Assembly: GCF_000737315.1 (NCBI RefSeq)
Contig: NZ_JMCB01000023.1
Span: forward strand, 124,001-188,000
DNA from: Hyalangium minutum
GTDB lineage: Bacteria > Myxococcota > Myxococcia > Myxococcales > Myxococcaceae
Direction of reading: 5' to 3'
Length of the DNA: 64,000 nt
Shown here: positions 4,560 through 41,344 of the stretch, piece by piece
How the letters are laid out: each line of letters opens with the position of its first letter
How positions within the stretch are numbered: position 1 is the stretch's first letter
Translations under genes and position numbers: made by a program
Notes under the pieces: model-generated
Told to the model about the DNA's origin: nothing
The model's input: only the letters and a program-made list of their open reading frames with translations
Database searches by the model: none

Positions 4560-5108
4560 CTACGTCCAGAGAAGAGCCAGGTCCAGCCCCAGCGCTTCGA
4601 ACGGCTCCGCCTGTACGAGTGCCCCGTCCCGATGGAGTGCAAGCTGGACGTAGCGCCCCTCATCGAGCCGGTAGATCTCCAACGTGCGTGAGTCCGGATT
4701 CACGAGCCACACATGGCCCACGCCCTCCTGCGCATACACAGGAAGCTTGACCTCACGATCCAGAACCTGCGTCGAGGACGAGAGCACCTCACAGACCCAG
4801 TCGGGGGGCAGAGTGAAAGCAGCGGTTCGCGGGTACACCGGCATCCGATGACGCCTCCACCCCGCCAAGTCCGGCACGAGAACGTTCTCACCCAGTCACA
4901 GCTCCGGTTCATCCACGATGAACCAACCACTGGGCCCCGGTTCTCCCAGATCGAAACGGTTCAAGAGCAACGCGCCCAGTCGAGAGGCCGTCATCGCATG
5001 AGGCGATGACGGGCGAGGGCTGACGAACAGCTCTCCAGCGACGAGCTCGCCCACGACATTCTCGGGAAGCGCCTCAAGATCCGCGACTGTGGCGGGCTTC
5101 CGTCCCAT
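4560..5108 (-). pseudogene. Uma2/DUF820 family endonuclease interrupted by an in-frame TGA
   Basis: ELVAGELFVSPRP...EPEL*LGENVLVPDLAGWRR...PDWVCEVLSSST..DR..KL..YA; both halves in one frame, stop at 4896-4898. Confidence 0.85.
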
Positions 5109-5143
5109 TCCCTCACCATACTCCCCAACCCCCGTTCCCATGT

Positions 5144-5362
5144 TCATGAGAACGGGTCTAACACTCCGGTCTGACATCCTGGGTAGCCTCCCTTCATCCT
5201 ACCCAACTGGTAGCGTCGACGACAAGTTGGTGCCCGACGTTGCGTCTGCGCGAGCCCCTGCGGTGGCGGAATCATCTGGGAACCTGTCTGACAAGTAGAC
5301 CGGTCTGGGAAGGCGACGACCGGAGCGAGCACGTACGTCCGGGGTGGTACAGACCGAGCCAA
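5144..5362 (-). repeat. Relic of GntR-tail-type repeat (two CQTG-encoding cores)
   Basis: Reverse complement of 5284-5303 CCGGTCTACTTGTCAGACAG matches 40909-40928 at 18/20; second core TGTCAGACCGG at 5166-5176; frame reads DRSTCQTG and YPGCQTG. Confidence 0.65.
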
Positions 5363-5389: not shown

Positions 5390-6256
5390 ATGTCACGGTC
5401 CATTGAGCACGCGTCGTTCCCGCAGCACGGTCACGCCCATTCATGGCGCGGGCTCCTCCTGGGGCTCGCGCTTTGCTTGTTGCCAGTGAGCGCTCGAGCC
5501 GCCCCGCTGGGGGATGCCCAGACCTATCTGCTCTCTGCCAAGCGCCTCTACGAGGGCCTCGATTACGAGGCCGCACTCACCCAAATTCAGCTTGCGAGAC
5601 AGGTGCCCCGCAACCGGGACCAGGAACTTACCCTGCTCCTCTACGAAGGCATCCTGCTATCGGAGTTGAACCGATGGGACGAGGGTGCCGCCTCGTTCAA
5701 AACCGCTTTGGAGTTGGATACTGCGGCGAAACTGCCAGTGCAAGTGCCGCCCAAGGTCAGTGCTCGCTTCGAGTCCCTGCGCGAAAAAAAGAAGAGGGAA
5801 CTCGCTGCCCAGGTGACACCAGCCCCGGCTCTTCCCTCCCCTACAGAGAACCCCAGCCCGCCAACAGAAGCGGCTTCACCTGCGTCTCTGCCACCTTCCA
5901 TCGTGACAGTCACTGACAGCCCTTCACCCGAGAAGGAACTGCACAGCTATTCGCTGATCCCAGCGATTGCCGGAGGCAGCCTGGTAGTGGCAGGTGGGGT
6001 CTCCTGGGCTCTCTCTCGTGGCGAACTCAACCGTTTGCGTACGGCTTCCCCCAGCCTCACGAGCGAGGAAGATGTGCGACACAGCGTCTCGCGCGGACGT
6101 ACCTTGCAGACGCTTGGGATGGGCCTGCTGGGAGCGGGAACAGCGGGCCTGCTGACAGCAGCGGGCATGTACATGCTCGGAGGGCCTTCTCGGCCCACAA
6201 CAATTGGCGTGGGGACGACTGGGCAAGCCGTCATCCTTTATGGAGACTGGCCATGA
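5390..6256 (+). CDS. Secreted TPR-like protein with Pro/Ser linker and C-terminal hydrophobic anchor
   Basis: Signal peptide; LYEGLDYEAAL...LLYEGILL...LPVQVPPKV; homologous to 62132 and 63008 ORFs; ATGA overlap with next gene. Confidence 0.8.
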   Translation: MSRSIEHASFPQHGHAHSWRGLLLGLALCLLPVSARAAPLGDAQTYLLSAKRLYEGLDYEAALTQIQLARQVPRNRDQELTLLLYEGILLSELNRWDEGAASFKTALELDTAAKLPVQVPPKVSARFESLREKKKRELAAQVTPAPALPSPTENPSPPTEAASPASLPPSIVTVTDSPSPEKELHSYSLIPAIAGGSLVVAGGVSWALSRGELNRLRTASPSLTSEEDVRHSVSRGRTLQTLGMGLLGAGTAGLLTAAGMYMLGGPSRPTTIGVGTTGQAVILYGDWP

Positions 6257-9003
6257 GCCGGGGCGCCATAAGCAGAAGCCTGCCTCATACAGCATTCGCC
6301 GTCATCCTGGCAGCCCTCAGTGGCTGCGCCGACTTCGAGCAGGCGGGTGAATCTTTTTGCCAACAGAACCTCTCGCGCTGTGGCCGAGCCACGGAGCCCG
6401 AGCCCTCTTCCAATGAAACCATTCCCGACGCTGGGGAGCCCAGTTCCAGCGATTCAGGCCCAGGCACTCCAAACGCGGGGGGATCTGATGCGGGAGTCAT
6501 GGATTCAGGGGTTCCAGACGTGGCAGCTCCTGACTCGGGCACTCCGGACGCGGGCAGGCCCGATGCAGGAACTTCTCAAGACGCAGGGCTCCCGGACGCA
6601 GGTCCACCGCCCAATACACCTCCCACCATTACCGTAAGCTCCCAGTCCGCCTCTCAGGTGGCTGCGCACGGAACTGTCACCTTCTCAGTGGTGGCTCAAG
6701 ATAATGAGAGCAGTTCACTCCAGTTCTCCTGGAGCGCCAGTACAGGAGCTTTCGGAAGCCCTCAGAGTACTAGCAACTCCAGTATCGTCACTTGGTCCGC
6801 CGGGGGTTGTGCAGCCGGTGGCACTGTGACCATCACCGTCAAAGTCTCCGACGCACAAGCTGACTTCTCGACCAAAGCTTTCAGCGTCTCAATGGCTCGC
6901 TGTCTACCCACGTCCATTGCAAGTGGGAGTAGACACTCTATTGCCTTGCTTGCGGATGGCACTGTTTGGGCCTGGGGAGACAATACCGCTGGTCAGCTTG
7001 GCGACGGTACCTCTACCCTGCGCTACATCCCTTCCCAGGTCTCGGGACTCTCCGGCATCACCGCCCTGGCTGCTGGAGGCTACCACTCTCTGGCCTTGCG
7101 CAACGACGGCACTGTCTGGGCCTGGGGCGAAAACTCCTATGGCCAACTGGGTGATGGGACCACCACCGATCGTCTTACCCCCGTCCAAGTACCGGGACTC
7201 TCGGGCATCACCACCCTGGCCGCTGGCATCTACCACTCTCTGGCCCTGCGCAACGACGGCACTGTTTGGGCCTGGGGCTATAACAGCGTTGGCCAACTCG
7301 GCGATGGAACCACTACCAATCGCCTCACCCCCGTCCAAGTACCGGGGCTCTCGGGCACTACGACTCTGAACGCTGGAGGCGCCCACTCTCTGGCCTTGCG
7401 CAACGACGGCACTGTCTGGGCTTGGGGCTACAACGGCTATGGCCAGCTAGGAGCTGGGACCACCACCGATCGTCTCACTCCCCTCCAGATTCCAGGACTT
7501 TTAGGCATCACGGCCCTGGCCACTGGAATCTCCCACTCCCTGGCCCTGAGTAACAACGGCACTGTCTGGGCCTGGGGTTTCAACCTCTACGGCCAGTTGG
7601 GCGATGGGACGACCACCAATCGCCTTACCCCCGTCCAGGTACCAGGGCTCTCGGGAACTACGACTCTAAACGCTGGAGGCTCCCACTCTCTGGCCTTACG
7701 CAACGACGGCACTGTCTGGGCTTGGGGCTACAACAACTATGGCCAAGTGGGCGATGGGAGCACCATCAATCGCCGCACCCCAGTCCAGGTCTCCGGCCTC
7801 ACGGGCATTACGGTCATGGCCGCTGCAGAATCCCACACTCTGGCTTTGCGCAACGACGGCACTGTCTGGGCTTGGGGCCACAACGGCTATGGCAAGCTGG
7901 GCGATGGAACTAGCGCGGAGCGCCTCACCGCTGTCCGAGTCTTAGGCATTTCGGGCATCACAGCCCTAGCAGCTAGAGGCTACCACACTCTGGCCTTGCG
8001 CAACGACGGCACTGTCTGGGCTTGGGGCTACAACAACTATGGCCAAGTGGGCGATGGGACCACCACCAATCGCCCCACCCCTTTCCAGCTCTCCGGCCTC
8101 TCGGGCATCACGGCCCTGGCCGCTGGAGAATCCCACTCTCTGGCTCTGCGCAATGACGGCACTGTTTGGGCCTGGGGCTATAACGTCGCTGGCCAACTCG
8201 GCGATGGGACGACCACCAATCGCCTTACCCCCTTCCAGGTCCCTGGCCTCTCAGGCATTACGGCCCTGGCCGCAGGAGACTTTCACTCTCTGGCGTTGCG
8301 CAACGACGGCACTGTCTGGGCCTGGGGCTCCAACGGCGCTGGCCAACTCGGCGATGGGACGACCACCAATCGCCTCACCCCCTTCCAGGTTCCAGGACTT
8401 TTAGGCATCACGACCCTGTCTGCTGGAATCTCCCACTCTCTAGCCCTGCGCAGCGACGGCACCGTCTGGGCCTGGGGTTCCAACCTCTACGGCCAACTGG
8501 GCGATGGGACCACCACCAATCGCCCCACCCCCTTCCAGGTCTTAGGACTCTTGGGCATCAACGCCCTGGCCGCTGGAGGCTACCACTCTCTGGCCTCGCG
8601 CAACGACGGCACTACTTGGGTCTGGGGCTACAATTACTATCGTCAACTGGGCGATGGGACGACCACCGATCGCCCCACCCCTTTCCAGCTCTCCAGCCTC
8701 TCAGGCATCACGACCCTGTCGGCTAACATCTTCCACTCTCTGGCCCTTCGCAACGATGGCACTATTCGGTCGTGGGGCAGCAACAGCCTGGGCCGACTCG
8801 GCGACGGGACTCTTATTCATCGAGCTACCCCCGTCCAGGTCTCCGGCCTCTCAAACATTACGGCCCTAGCCGCTGGAGTCGCCCACTCTCTGGCCCTTCG
8901 CAACAACGGCACCGTCTGGGCCTGGGGTTCAAACTTCTACGACCAGATTGGCGACGGAACTCCTGCAATCTTCCCGGTACCTATACAGACCCAGCTTCCG
9001 TAA
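6253..9003 (+). CDS. RCC1-repeat lipoprotein (14 blades, probably two 7-bladed propellers) with PDAG linker and Ig/PKD-like domain
   Basis: Lipobox LSGC; PDAG/DSG repeats; 14 copies of HSLAL.NDGTVWAWG.N..GQLGDG. Confidence 0.92.
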   Translation: MSRGAISRSLPHTAFAVILAALSGCADFEQAGESFCQQNLSRCGRATEPEPSSNETIPDAGEPSSSDSGPGTPNAGGSDAGVMDSGVPDVAAPDSGTPDAGRPDAGTSQDAGLPDAGPPPNTPPTITVSSQSASQVAAHGTVTFSVVAQDNESSSLQFSWSASTGAFGSPQSTSNSSIVTWSAGGCAAGGTVTITVKVSDAQADFSTKAFSVSMARCLPTSIASGSRHSIALLADGTVWAWGDNTAGQLGDGTSTLRYIPSQVSGLSGITALAAGGYHSLALRNDGTVWAWGENSYGQLGDGTTTDRLTPVQVPGLSGITTLAAGIYHSLALRNDGTVWAWGYNSVGQLGDGTTTNRLTPVQVPGLSGTTTLNAGGAHSLALRNDGTVWAWGYNGYGQLGAGTTTDRLTPLQIPGLLGITALATGISHSLALSNNGTVWAWGFNLYGQLGDGTTTNRLTPVQVPGLSGTTTLNAGGSHSLALRNDGTVWAWGYNNYGQVGDGSTINRRTPVQVSGLTGITVMAAAESHTLALRNDGTVWAWGHNGYGKLGDGTSAERLTAVRVLGISGITALAARGYHTLALRNDGTVWAWGYNNYGQVGDGTTTNRPTPFQLSGLSGITALAAGESHSLALRNDGTVWAWGYNVAGQLGDGTTTNRLTPFQVPGLSGITALAAGDFHSLALRNDGTVWAWGSNGAGQLGDGTTTNRLTPFQVPGLLGITTLSAGISHSLALRSDGTVWAWGSNLYGQLGDGTTTNRPTPFQVLGLLGINALAAGGYHSLASRNDGTTWVWGYNYYRQLGDGTTTDRPTPFQLSSLSGITTLSANIFHSLALRNDGTIRSWGSNSLGRLGDGTLIHRATPVQVSGLSNITALAAGVAHSLALRNNGTVWAWGSNFYDQIGDGTPAIFPVPIQTQLP
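6911..8995 (+). repeat. 14 x 150-bp coding tandem repeat (RCC1 blades)
   Basis: ACTGTCTGGGCCTGGGG-type core recurs at exactly 150-bp steps from 6961 to 8911. Confidence 0.95.
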
Positions 9004-38842: not shown

Positions 38843-38987
38843 ACCTGGGATTTCACGAGCAGCCAGACAGCCTCGGTCCTTTCCACTTTGGGCGGGCGGA
38901 GGGAGCACAGCACCCACCGCTTCGCGCTATATAAGGTAGGCGGATACCGCCGGGGTGCTCCCGGCGCAGGAAAGGACGAAGCAGACC

Positions 38988-39698
38988 ATGGGTTGGGAAA
39001 CCAATGGATGGCAGACGACCTCCAGCGAGGAGGTGAACGCCACCCTCGTGCAGGAGTCTCGGCGCGCGTTCATGTCGCGCGTGTATGGCTGGATGTTCGC
39101 CGGCCTGTGGATCACCGGTGTGATGGCGCTCTACACGGTGAGCAACCGGGCGCTGCTCGAGTTCACGTTCCAGTGGCGCATCCCGCTGCTGCTGGCGGAG
39201 CTGGGCCTGGTGTTCGTGCTCTCGCTGGCGGCGGCGCGGCTGCCGGGCGCATTGGCCGGCGCGCTGTTCGTGGGCTACGCGGCGCTCACAGGCATGACGC
39301 TGTCCATCTACTTCCTGATCTACACGGAGGGCTCCATCGGTCAGGCGTTCCTGATGACGGGCGGTACCTTCGGCGCGATGAGCCTCTACGGCACCTTCAC
39401 GAAGAAAGACCTGAGCGGCTGGGGCGCGTTCCTCTTCATGGGCTTGGTGGGCATCATCATCGCCAGCGTGGTGAACATCTTCATGGGCAGCGACATGATG
39501 GGCTTCGTCACCGCCTGCGCCTGCGTCGTGGTGTTCGCGGGTCTGACGGCCTATGACACCCAGAAGCTGCGCGAGATGCACGCGGCCACGGGCTACAGCA
39601 GCGCCGCGACTGTCAGCATCGTCGGCGCGCTCACGCTGTACCTGGACTTCATCAACCTCTTCCTGGCGCTGCTGCGGCTGTTCGGTCGCCGTCGCTAG
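38988..39698 (+). CDS. Bax inhibitor-1 / YccA family membrane protein
   Basis: FMSRVYGWM, TKKDLSGWG, TAYDTQKL, GALTLYLDFINLFL. Confidence 0.95.
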   Translation: MGWETNGWQTTSSEEVNATLVQESRRAFMSRVYGWMFAGLWITGVMALYTVSNRALLEFTFQWRIPLLLAELGLVFVLSLAAARLPGALAGALFVGYAALTGMTLSIYFLIYTEGSIGQAFLMTGGTFGAMSLYGTFTKKDLSGWGAFLFMGLVGIIIASVVNIFMGSDMMGFVTACACVVVFAGLTAYDTQKLREMHAATGYSSAATVSIVGALTLYLDFINLFLALLRLFGRRR

Positions 39699-39810: not shown

Positions 39811-39889
39811 TTCCCCGAGGCCCGCTCAGCGCTCGTGTCAGACCCATCTGATGTGCTCCTGGCCCTTTGCAACGAGAAGGGTGGCGGGC

Positions 39890-41344
39890 ATGGAACGGAC
39901 GGGGCTCGTAGCGCACATCGAGCATGACCTCGAGCAAGTGATCTCCTGGGGCAAGCTGCCCAGGAATGGCTTTCTTCCCTCGGAGCAGGTGCTGGCAGAG
40001 CGCCACGGTGTCTCACGAGCCACGGCCCGGGTGGCATTGCTACGGCTCGAAGCGCGAGGACTGGTGGTGCAGCACCCTGGACGCCGGAGCCGCGCGGTGC
40101 CTTTGCAGGAGGCAGTGACGCTGGAGAACCTGAGCGTGGCACTCCACGCCGAAGGCCCCTCCCATCCAGAGAGACAGCGCCTGCTGGAAGGATTCCTCGA
40201 GCTCAAGCGAGAGCTGATGGTGGATTTGCTGGCCGCCTGCTGCGAGCGAGCCTCCGCGTCCAACTTGAGCCAGCTCCTAAACGTATGCTTCACGTTAGGA
40301 GAGGCGGCGCACTGGGAAGAGAGCAGCGTCTGGGCAAGACGGGAGTTCGAGCTGCTGCGGTTGGCCGCTGTGGCGGCGAACCGTCCTGGGCACTTCCTGC
40401 TCGTCCAGACGCTGGAGCGCTCTTTCTGGGCCATGGCCGCACGACTGCTCCCCGTTCTGGACTGCGCGGCCATCCGCCACTGGGGGCTCTGTGCCTTCCA
40501 CGCGTTGGGAGACAAAGACGCTCAAGCACTGAAGCGAGAGTTGCCGGCGCTGCTCCAGGCAAGCGATGAGCGCGTGCTCAGCTCGCTCGCATCAACCCGC
40601 CGTGAGTACACCCCACCGCCAAGACTCCACGGCTCGGCGCATCAAAGACCTGAGCGGAGTTCCAAGTCCAAGCCCACGGGAGACAAGGAAGTGGACGCGG
40701 ATCATCCTCACCGACCTGCTTGTCAGACCGGTTTACACGAGGAGCCGCCGGAAGATGCCCTTCCCTTCGAGCCCCTTCAGGGCAACCTGCCGGATACGGC
40801 AGTGCTCCGCGGGGCTGCTGGTCAGACCGGTTCGCGCGAAGGGCCATCGGAAGCTCCTGCTCCTTCTGCGACGCCGCCGCGCCAGTTGCCAGACGCAGCC
40901 GTGGCCTACCGGTCTGCTTGTCAGACACGTGCGTGCCAGACACCGCATGAGGAAACACCGCCCGCTGAGGGTGCTCAGCGCCAGTTACCAGACGCAGCCG
41001 TAGCCTACCGGTCTGCTTGTCAGACACGTGCGTGCCAGACACCACCGGAGGAAACACCGACCGACGAGGGTGCCCAGCGCCGCTTGTCCGAACTGACCGT
41101 GGCCAACCAGTCTGCTTGTCAGACACTTTCGGAGCAGGTGCGAAAGGCCTTCGGCTCCGAGTCTGAATCCTGGTTCACACGCTCCGGAAGCGATTCCGGC
41201 GGAAAGATGTTCGGGGCAGGCGAAGGCTCGGGCCTGGAAGCGCTCCGGGGCGCACAGGCGTGGTCGCCCATTCCATGGTCACGATGTGCCTGGGCCCGCC
41301 TACCGCTTCCCATGGCACCGGCGCTGAGGGTGGGTTCTGTATAG
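39890..41344 (+). CDS. GntR/FadR-family regulator with long repetitive C-terminal tail
   Basis: wHTH LPSEQVLAERHGVSRATARVAL..LEARGLV; FCD-like domain; about 240-aa low-complexity tail. Confidence 0.85.
   Translation: MERTGLVAHIEHDLEQVISWGKLPRNGFLPSEQVLAERHGVSRATARVALLRLEARGLVVQHPGRRSRAVPLQEAVTLENLSVALHAEGPSHPERQRLLEGFLELKRELMVDLLAACCERASASNLSQLLNVCFTLGEAAHWEESSVWARREFELLRLAAVAANRPGHFLLVQTLERSFWAMAARLLPVLDCAAIRHWGLCAFHALGDKDAQALKRELPALLQASDERVLSSLASTRREYTPPPRLHGSAHQRPERSSKSKPTGDKEVDADHPHRPACQTGLHEEPPEDALPFEPLQGNLPDTAVLRGAAGQTGSREGPSEAPAPSATPPRQLPDAAVAYRSACQTRACQTPHEETPPAEGAQRQLPDAAVAYRSACQTRACQTPPEETPTDEGAQRRLSELTVANQSACQTLSEQVRKAFGSESESWFTRSGSDSGGKMFGAGEGSGLEALRGAQAWSPIPWSRCAWARLPLPMAPALRVGSV
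40716..41126 (+). repeat. Five degenerate 99-bp tandem units with conserved CTGCT(T/G)GTCAGAC core
   Basis: Cores start at 40716, 40815, 40914, 41013, 41112. Confidence 0.9.

Follow-up and report, generated by a model that had tools for sequence, protein, structure and literature searches.

The stretch of DNA analysed here (the window, 64,000 nt) comes from Hyalangium minutum and covers positions 124,001 to 188,000 of contig NZ_JMCB01000023.1 on the forward strand. Between 39500 and 41500 its plus strand holds a single real gene, with the ATG at 39890 and the stop codon ending at 41344. The gene encodes a GntR/FadR-type regulator of 484 residues, identical to P0001, in which a FadR-fold domain is followed by a long C-terminal tail. 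Within this tail, at 40716-41125, a core of 14 nt with the pattern CTGCT(T/G)GTCAGAC(A/C) recurs five times. Very probably the tail consists of five copies, partly decayed and arranged in tandem and in frame, of a palindromic element of about 75 nt that is specific to this lineage. With equally high confidence we conclude that nearly all members of the regulator's paralog family have tails built from this element, which in related myxobacteria is also dispersed, mostly between genes.

The array was analysed by motif searches. Exact matches to CTGCTKGTCAGACM were found on the plus strand at 40716, 40815, 40914, 41013 and 41112, each exactly 99 bp from the next. When up to one mismatch was allowed, 6 matches were obtained where 0.15 were expected, and none of 100 shuffled sequences equalled that number. 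Outside the 14-nt core, the 99-nt units show only 29-51% mutual identity, with the exception of units 3 and 4 (88%), whereas 12-14 of the 14 core positions are identical. An earlier reading made from the letters of the window alone (the sequence-only reading) had described five 99-bp units with only the core strongly conserved, and also palindromes within the cores. Both observations were reproduced, the palindromes being TGTC-A-GACA in units 3-5 and GGTC-A-GACC in unit 2. The contrast between core and flanks rules out plain chance or a neutral tandem duplication as the origin of the array. Unit 4 is 88-91% identical to unit 3 and has therefore arisen by a recent tandem duplication. In unit 3, a second ACQT is written with other codons (GCG TGC CAG ACA, TGCCAGAC at 40934-40941), and another TGCCAGAC at 40887-40894 lies in a different frame, where it reads LPD. 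Tandem Repeats Finder detected just 2.5 copies (40879-41126). A clustered regularly interspaced short palindromic repeat (CRISPR) array was considered and ruled out, since the repeats lie within an open reading frame (ORF) that is maintained and have diverged outside the 14-nt core, and since the supposed spacers of units 3 and 4 share 88% identity. The heptamer GTCAGAC is not over-represented in the whole window (9 against 10.4 expected); six of the nine stand at the regulator gene and two at a second locus near 5.2 kb. TGYCAGAC was found 11 times where 5.4 were expected, 8 of these at the regulator gene and 2 at the 5.2-kb locus. The sequence-only reading had pictured the array as helically phased, which did not hold: 99/10.5 gives 9.4 helical turns, and the sites are thus out of phase.

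The features of the two loci are collected in Table 1.

Table 1. Features at the regulator gene and at the 5.2-kb locus, in window coordinates.
Feature	Position	Strand	Basis or remark
Regulator ORF, 484 residues, GntR/FadR-type with long C-terminal tail	39890..41344	+	ORF call, Pfam, homolog search
FadR-fold domain, residues 1-237, winged helix-turn-helix (HTH) and all-helical effector/dimerisation domain	39890..40600	+	Pfam, AlphaFold, Foldseek, third-position GC (GC3)
C-terminal tail, residues 238-484, predicted disordered, low GC3, frame maintained	40601..41341	+	AlphaFold, GC3, shuffles
Unit 1	40680..40778	+	core CTGCTTGTCAGACC at 40716-40729, peptide PACQTG
Unit 2	40779..40877	+	core CTGCTGGTCAGACC at 40815-40828, peptide AAGQTG, Cys lost
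Unit 3	40878..40976	+	core CTGCTTGTCAGACA at 40914-40927
Unit 4	40977..41075	+	core at 41013-41026; second TGCCAGAC at 41033-41040
Unit 5	41076..41174	+	core CTGCTTGTCAGACA at 41112-41125, peptide SACQTL
WSPIPW, window form of the tail-closing WSPVPW motif	41261..41278	+	peptide conserved in many paralogs
Leader conserved across the family; TGTCAG at about -54, followed by a conserved block up to the ribosome-binding site ..TGCAACGAGAAGGGTGGCGGGC-ATG	39820..39889	+	paralog alignment
Upstream GTGTCAGACC, GTC-A-GAC core	39835..39844	+	46-55 nt before the ATG at 39890
Solo, nearly full-length element copy, divergent intergenic region	5252..5328	-	nhmmer E = 2.5e-8, model positions 8-84
Second TGTCAGAC (TGTCAGACCGG)	5169..5176	-	motif search; 57 nt before the ATG of a Uma2-like gene

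In the protein, the sole Pfam match was to the GntR winged HTH domain (PF00392, residues 8-66, E = 3e-11), and no match to the FCD domain was obtained in the Pfam scan. NCBIfam gave weak NanR- and FadR-like matches, and a profile search against the PDB matched the HTH domains of PdhR, YvoA, NanR and FadR. An AlphaFold model was computed from an alignment of 34 homologs. Residues 1-237 were confidently modelled as the HTH domain and a seven-helix bundle, with a predicted local distance difference test score (pLDDT) of mostly 85-98 and above 90 for the seven helices at residues 78-237. When the model was compared with the PDB by Foldseek, the top match was the E. coli FadR-DNA complex 1hw1_A with a template modelling (TM) score of 0.76 on the target and a root-mean-square deviation of 3.7 Å, followed by further FadR entries, including 1e2x, with TM scores of 0.75-0.76 on the target. 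Judged by the predicted structure, the regulator is of the FadR-type fold, as the sequence-only reading had proposed.

The tail differs from this domain in composition, with a GC3 of 0.52-0.63 compared to 0.73-0.83 in the domain, and its pLDDT is below 50 nearly throughout. The exception are residues 392-421 (window 41063-41152), which are predicted to form one helix (pLDDT 75-81) that spans the fifth unit and sequence beyond it. The 247 codons of the tail contain no stop, an openness that was seen in 41 of 20,000 composition-preserving shuffles. In many paralogs the tail is closed by WSPVPW, whose codons vary synonymously (TCG/TCA/TCC, CCC/CCA, CCA/CCG). Since this peptide is conserved with synonymous variation and the frame is kept open, the tail is translated in this frame.

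A protein search with the regulator returned 190 homologs at E<=1e-3, with named members from Hyalangium, Stigmatella, Corallococcus and Aggregicoccus and several paralogs per genome. All 120 homologs listed of these 190 have tails (total lengths 273-588 residues), and in 92 of the 120 the motif S-A-C-x-T-G is present, with 164 instances in all. The paralog tails carry 1-7 copies of a unit of about 33 residues, ..LP(G/D)A..PN(R/L)SAC(Q/P/H/R/L)TGS(C)Q.PP.G... When 28 metagenome loci were recovered via the conserved domain alone, the motif DNA was found to be almost invariant in them and reads CCC AAC CGG TCT GCT TGT CNG ACA GGT TCG TGC CAG. This DNA forms the palindrome AACC(G/T)GTCTG-CTTGT-CAGAC(A/C)GGTT. 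The core is kept by paralogs whose domains are 43-66% identical, across several genera. In other paralog tails, unrelated low-complexity repeats stand ahead of the element, such as PEVPT/PAAPT runs in L025 and repeats of about 20 residues (EPSPAEQFxESHTEPEAARD) in L004 and L006. At L009 (5259-7817) and L116 (4210-6733), the genes after two related paralogs encode an alpha/beta hydrolase and an acyl-CoA dehydrogenase-like protein; otherwise the neighbours of the paralogs differ, so there is no common operon.

Whether the core is held as DNA or as peptide can be read from its codons. In strictly defined core instances, TCT is used in 20 of 22, GCT in 18 of 20, TGT in 21 of 22 and ACA and GGT each in 22 of 22, whereas the use of the same codons elsewhere in the same genes is 11-24%. 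Fisher tests gave p values of 1e-11 to 1e-18, which overstate the independence of instances that share ancestry; the flanks, however, are saturated with change. All 10 instances of the second Cys of the unit use the common codon TGC. In a set of 30 units, 1.2-2.0 bits are held by third positions in the core compared to 0.1-0.7 bits in the distal flank, and within the core these positions are conserved to the same degree as first and second positions. Stigmatella tails retain AAC CAG TCT GCT TGC CAG ACA GGT. The DNA is also preserved where the peptide is lost: an inverted unit in L001 (5012-5038) reads NLSDKQTGS, with similar cases in L019 and L021, and in P0105, P0096 and P0067 the intact element DNA is read in frames b or c. 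The Cys of the motif is replaced by G in window unit 2 and by G, H, F or S in other variants. Taken together, the core is held by selection on the nucleic acid and not solely on the peptide. The suggestion of the sequence-only reading that the tail may be selected as DNA was thus supported for the core by the conservation of third positions across paralogs, with rare codons ending in T or A fixed. It had also asked whether frameshifts in the tail are tolerated. Frameshifted and inverted copies keep the DNA and lose the peptide, but frame 'a' is strongly preferred and was used in 164 of about 169 instances. Similarly, the CQT peptide repeat it had named as an alternative is not the whole story, given the codons and the other frames, although the tail is indeed translated and frame 'a' preferred.

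The distribution of the element was then analysed outside the tails. A core profile run over 234 kb (the window and the 28 loci) gave 35 matches within 31.5 kb of GntR ORFs and 2 in 202 kb of flanking DNA, corresponding to an enrichment of about 110-fold in the regulator ORFs. The two outside matches (window 5280-5307 and L009 6777-6809) are both intergenic and neither lies within a real ORF. The first belongs to the solo copy of the window (Table 1). Its core ACCGGTCTACTTGTCAGACAGGT at 5282-5304 has two mismatches to the 23-mer, where 0 matches were expected, and in the 'CQT' frame a stop codon stands 20 codons upstream. Next to the solo copy, the region upstream of the Uma2-like gene (5108-5195, minus strand, ATG near 5119) carries TGTCAGACC at -57 and weakly resembles the regulator leader. 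The gene downstream of the solo element adjoins an ORF of 916 residues (6253-9003, plus strand) with many RCC1-like repeats (..GTVWAWGxNxxGQLGDGT..). The solo element of L009 lies about 120 nt before the start of the alpha/beta hydrolase gene.

For a wider survey, one genome per species was scanned with the exact 19-mer GTCTGCTTGTCNGACMGGT, which catches near-consensus copies only. Of the 86 loci obtained, about 26 fell in unrelated phyla, close to the number expected by chance, and about 60 came from seven myxobacterial genomes, namely Hyalangium sp. SMAG_U11958, H. versicolor, Archangium sp., two metagenome-assembled genomes (one Archangiaceae, one Myxococcaceae) and two C. exercitus strains. 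A GntR domain was found within 8 kb at only 2 of these about 60 loci, and the element copies fall in junk ORFs, outside real genes. In Stigmatella this exact-pattern scan detected no copies, although the Stigmatella tails keep the core. The element, which the sequence-only reading had described at this gene, is thus not private to it but a dispersed repeat of about 75 nt that is mostly intergenic in related genomes and also occupies short, promoterless convergent gaps.

The aligned dispersed copies form a palindrome of about 75 nt, in which the outer stem CTGCCGG.GCGC / GCGCCGCCGGCAG surrounds the inner stem. The consensus is ..CTGCCGGGCGC..AACCTGTCTG-CTTGT-CAGACAGGTT..GCGCCGCCGGCAG.., it is open in 5 of 6 reading frames, and its translation is the entire 'LPGA...APPAG' tail unit. 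A crude gene call based on GC3 placed 59 of the 65 copies between genes (25 tandem, 12 convergent, 7 divergent, 16 at locus edges). Frequently the distance to a stop codon is 30-100 nt, and their orientation to the neighbouring gene is about even (11 to 8). The centre base of the dispersed copies is specific to the genome, being T in 22 of 27 copies in Hyalangium sp., G in 13 of 13 in C. exercitus and T in 5 of 7 in Archangium sp. The centre base of the tails agrees with that of the dispersed copies in the window (A) and in C. exercitus (G), whereas 2 of 3 Hyalangium sp. paralogs differ. C. exercitus has two subtypes, one with the loop CTTGT and the other a perfect palindrome, AACCTGTCCGAC(A/T)GTCGGACAGGTT, which also builds the regulator tails of this species (NLSDCRTGW) and is found 100-270 nt ahead of these regulator genes. 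In C. exercitus SDU142, 14 element copies of mixed orientation are packed into 1 kb of a divergent intergenic region (L061, 3268-4254). No obvious direct repeats that would indicate target-site duplications flank the 65 copies; inverted arms are present and the element ends are not sharply defined. Rfam gave no family match in the region or in nine element-rich loci, and a literature search for a described myxobacterial repetitive extragenic palindromic (REP) element found nothing relevant.

The ability of the element to fold was compared with that of shuffled sequences. The canonical dispersed copy folds as a long hairpin (z = -3.85, reached by 0 of 200 shuffles), whereas units 1-5 of the window fold no better than shuffles (z of -0.3, -0.6, +0.95, -0.06 and -1.3), which rules out stable hairpins in these five units. 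The hairpin is not followed by a T-run, and a scan for terminators returned no terminator-like site in the five cores or their units. Comparison of 28 tail and solo copies showed a nearly invariant right half TGTCNGACAGGTT and a drifting left arm, with a G·A mismatch at pair 5-21 in 12 of the 28; among 36 tail cores, this pair is unpaired in 17. Over the 36 tail cores, 83% of the cells are paired and 17 double changes were counted compared to 8.4 in shuffles (0 of 500 reached this number), the changes tracing to few lineages. In the NWS..TS subfamily, both arms are altered together (AACTGGTC..GACCAGTT). Since the right half is kept, the left arm has decayed and the units fold no better than shuffles, it is the specific sequence and not a hairpin that is preserved in this gene.

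A related motif stands in front of the gene. The upstream GTGTCAGACC matches TTGTCAGACC of tail unit 1 at 9 of 10 positions, and a leader block of about 65 nt recurs ahead of 23 paralog genes. In every paralog leader examined (L001-L027, L045, L096 and L116-L121, plus the window), TGTCAG is invariant at about -54 in a leader of about 65 nt, and the conserved block runs into the ribosome-binding site. The motif that the sequence-only reading had noticed about 50 bp upstream of the ATG is therefore a property of the family. It has the form TGTCAGAC in about 60% of the paralogs and TGTCAGCC in the remainder. In all 29 leaders TGTCAG is preceded by A, G or T, so that an ATG (25 leaders), a GTG (3) or a TTG (1) is formed. 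The ORF that would start there (at -52 to -65) varies in its frame relative to the main ORF and in its length, from 3 to >200 codons, with MSA-stop in two loci. The motif as the start of a conserved upstream peptide was therefore ruled out, because frame and length vary and no consistent peptide results. A consensus scan of the leader found no sigma-70-like promoter, and a sigma-54-like TGGCA..TGCA seen by eye in some leaders was rejected since it has the wrong spacing and is absent from the window. An operator, a component of the promoter or of the transcript start, or a very short ORF ahead of the gene could each account for the conservation of the leader. Full elements also occur 100-270 nt upstream of regulator genes in C. 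exercitus (L045 4531-4599, L096 3443-3617); in L096 the element and about 60 nt are tandemly duplicated, and the segment after each element resembles the 3' part of the leader (..CAACGAGGACGG..). Further upstream in the window, a unit of 24 bp occurs twice (39445-39492, 79% match) within a BI-1/YccA-like membrane protein gene (38955-39698).

The core was compared with the known operators of FadR-type regulators. FadR-subfamily sites are palindromes with TKGT and ACMA boxes, the GT and AC being typically 3 nt apart (Suvorova et al., PMC4494728). The core TTGT-CNG-ACA(G/C) agrees with this pattern at 7 of the 8 box positions, and the same number is reached by units 1 and 3-5 (TTGT-CAG-ACA(C/G)) and by unit 2 (TGGT-CAG-ACCG). 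The sequence-only reading had already called the sites operator-like and named TxGT-N3-AC as the form of FadR-subfamily operators. The sole freely varying core base is the dyad centre of GTC-N-GAC, which yields the Q, P, R and L codons (CAG, CCG, CGG, CTG); the H codon CAT additionally alters the base after the dyad centre. The probe sites used for E. coli FadR are AGCTGGTCCGACC (fadL), GGCTGGTCCGCT (fadD) and ATCTGGTACGACCAG (fadBA), compared here as GCTGGTCCGAC (fadL and fadD), TCTGGTACGAC (fadBA) and ACTGGTCTGAT (PMC4259882, Table 2). Unit 2 (GCTGGTCAGAC) is identical to the fadL/fadD site GCTGGTCCGAC at 10 of 11 positions, and the other units match fadL at 9 of 11. In FadR the DNA is contacted by R35, T44, R45, T46, T47, R49 and H65 (PMC4259882). 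When aligned by eye, the counterparts in the window protein are Q33, S42, R43, A44, T45, R47 and H62, of which four of seven are identical (R43, T45, R47 and H62), with T44 changed to S. S42, R43, T45 and R47 are invariant in all 34 aligned paralogs. By these sequence comparisons, the core looks like a site that a regulator of this type would bind. GTCAGAC stands at -54 in the leader, and the tail copies as well as most of the dispersed copies lie away from promoters.

From these results we tentatively propose that the cores may be recognition sites for the regulator's own family, arranged in cis for self-titration or autoregulation, a mechanism we put forward as possible rather than probable. 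The core GCT(T/G)GTC-N-GAC(A/C) would be a dyad-symmetric FadR-type recognition site that is bound by the winged-HTH dimers of the paralog family. Each gene would so carry 1-7 copies of its own family's site in the 3' part of its coding sequence, where the array could act in cis as a sink, a roadblock or a looping partner and buffer or feed back on the level of the regulator. Through the dispersed copies, this site would also reach other parts of the genome. Several observations weigh against this proposal. The GntR/FadR consensus is loose, and we estimate, for a uniform base composition, that a match occurs by chance within a 25-nt element in about 1% of cases. The leader form found in about 40% of the paralogs breaks the AC box, and the start-like NTG triplet may offer another cause for the conservation of the leader. 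Sites spaced by 9.4 helical turns are out of phase. The compensatory changes in the arms are left without explanation by an invariant recognition helix. The preference for frame 'a' indicates that a constraint on the frame or the peptide is present as well. The placement of the dispersed copies in convergent gaps (12 of 44 classifiable) and after gene ends, without a clear orientation bias, is REP-like and not promoter-like, and their genome-specific centre base points to amplification from a master copy, as for a mobile repeat.

The main alternative is that the element is selfish only, resembling a REP or a miniature inverted-repeat transposable element (MITE), and would multiply by a transposase in trans or by template switching and gene conversion, with the disordered tail tolerating its landing and duplication. 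The peptide and the operator likeness would then be by-products, as for the Rickettsia palindromic elements (RPE), which are known to occur in frame (PMC10969869). The prevalence of intergenic copies, including those in convergent gaps, fits well to this explanation, as do the mixed-orientation cluster and the two subtypes in C. exercitus, the genome-specific centre base, the long hairpin of the canonical copy, the openness in five frames and the recent tandem duplication of units 3 and 4. A selfish repeat does not easily account, however, for the old and nearly universal tie to one regulator family, in which the core outlasted the divergence of the domains, nor for the strong enrichment in the regulator ORFs. 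The silent sites of the core are kept while arms and flanks decay, which argues for selection in place and not for a recent insertion. In addition, no obvious target-site duplications were seen among the 65 copies, the ends of which are not sharply defined, and the Stigmatella tails keep the core in genomes where the exact-pattern scan found no copies. We consider the purely selfish explanation unlikely.

More improbable is an element of RNA or DNA structure, in which hairpins of the mRNA or cruciforms of the DNA would terminate, stabilise or pause transcription or translation, tuning the expression at the 3' end of the regulator genes and serving as terminators or stabilisers between genes. 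The canonical copies are GC-rich palindromes located 30-100 nt after stop codons and often between convergent genes, and the arms covary in the tail cores and were changed jointly in the NWS..TS subfamily. On the other side, the five units of the window do not fold better than shuffles, pair 5-21 is often open, and the loop CTTGT, which a stem does not need, is conserved with the right half while the left arm decays; a T-run, a terminator-like site at the five units and a match in Rfam were not obtained either. A purely structural role misfits because the stems have decayed and the loop is conserved. The least probable explanation is a peptide repeat ..LPxA..PNRSAC(Q/P/H)TGSCQ.., such as a metal or redox motif based on Cys or a site of modification, with the conservation of the DNA being secondary. 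The open tail frame, the prevalence of frame 'a', the synonymous variation of WSPVPW and the different codons (GCG TGC) of the second ACQT in units 3 and 4 are in line with it. A purely peptide role misfits because of the fixed codons and the non-coding copies: rare codons are fixed at silent sites, and identical DNA is found in non-coding places, in other frames and inverted. Moreover, the Cys is dispensable in many variants, the tail is disordered in the AlphaFold prediction, and the most variable residue coincides exactly with the dyad centre. Since selfish, structural and peptide roles each misfit alone, a recognition site for a protein is the most economical mechanism, and the winged HTH of the regulator family would be its best candidate binder.

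The element has a strong and long-standing link to the FadR-fold family. That it also acts like a repeat that proliferates is compatible with the proposed recognition site. A doubtful extension of this proposal goes further than the cores themselves. An operator might have turned into a proliferating repeat, such that the paralogs, each with an array of this operator in its translated tail, would be self-titrating transcription factors and the dispersed copies would wire their neighbours into a repeat-borne regulon. On this view, repeat and regulator family would co-evolve as a unit, somewhat like REP-derived hairpins (REPINs) with their REP-associated tyrosine transposases (RAYTs), a DNA-binding regulator taking the place of the transposase.

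Several known systems share single traits with the array. The incA iterons of plasmid P1 and datA of E. coli are non-coding arrays of sites that titrate or handcuff a protein encoded nearby, and their binding has been shown. The function proposed here is similar, but the array is translated and its binding hypothetical. With REPs, bacterial interspersed mosaic elements (BIMEs) and REPINs the element has in common that it is a short, imperfect and mostly extragenic palindrome in many copies, found after gene ends or between convergent genes, in mixed clusters and with genome-specific variants; this describes the related genomes, while the window has one solo copy. A head of the GTAG/CGTC type was not identified in the element, and REPs are not known to form in-frame arrays inside a transcription-factor gene. 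RPE are selfish repeats that occur in frame inside coding genes as well as between genes (PMC10969869). The element is likewise a small palindromic repeat found both intergenically and in frame, where its peptide segment is tolerated by the host protein. RPE are, however, 100-150 nt long and inserted singly in many unrelated genes. The present element has about 75 nt, is in frame essentially in one regulator family only, where 1-7 tandem copies occupy the 3' end of the genes, and shows a silent-site constraint on the core that has outlasted the decay of the palindrome. The Correia element is a dispersed repeat with an IHF site that can alter the expression of neighbouring genes (PMC10969869), whereas the presumed binder here would be a specific regulator with many paralogs whose own genes hold the densest arrays. 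The core resembles the FadR operators of E. coli (fadL/fadD GCTGGTCCGAC, fadBA TCTGGTACGAC) with boxes 3 nt apart, and the protein has the FadR fold by prediction and four of the seven contact residues. Unlike these operators, which are located in target promoters, the candidate sites lie in the regulator's own coding sequence and in a dispersed repeat, with GC-rich flanks. None of these systems combines a translated tandem array, the restriction to one family and the likeness to the operator of that family.

Even if the cores are not bound, the locus reveals silent-site selection on a translated repeat. It also links a palindromic repeat to a single gene family in several genera, a situation uncommon among REP- or MITE-like elements. 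Long 'low-complexity' tails are annotated as protein features, and a constraint at the level of the DNA should be weighed when this is done. If the cores are bound, the family would offer a clear natural example of a transcription factor whose own sites are arrayed within its coding sequence. Such an array would serve as an in-built decoy or as a device for feedback, and it would provide a route for a mobile repeat to spread an operator through the genome.

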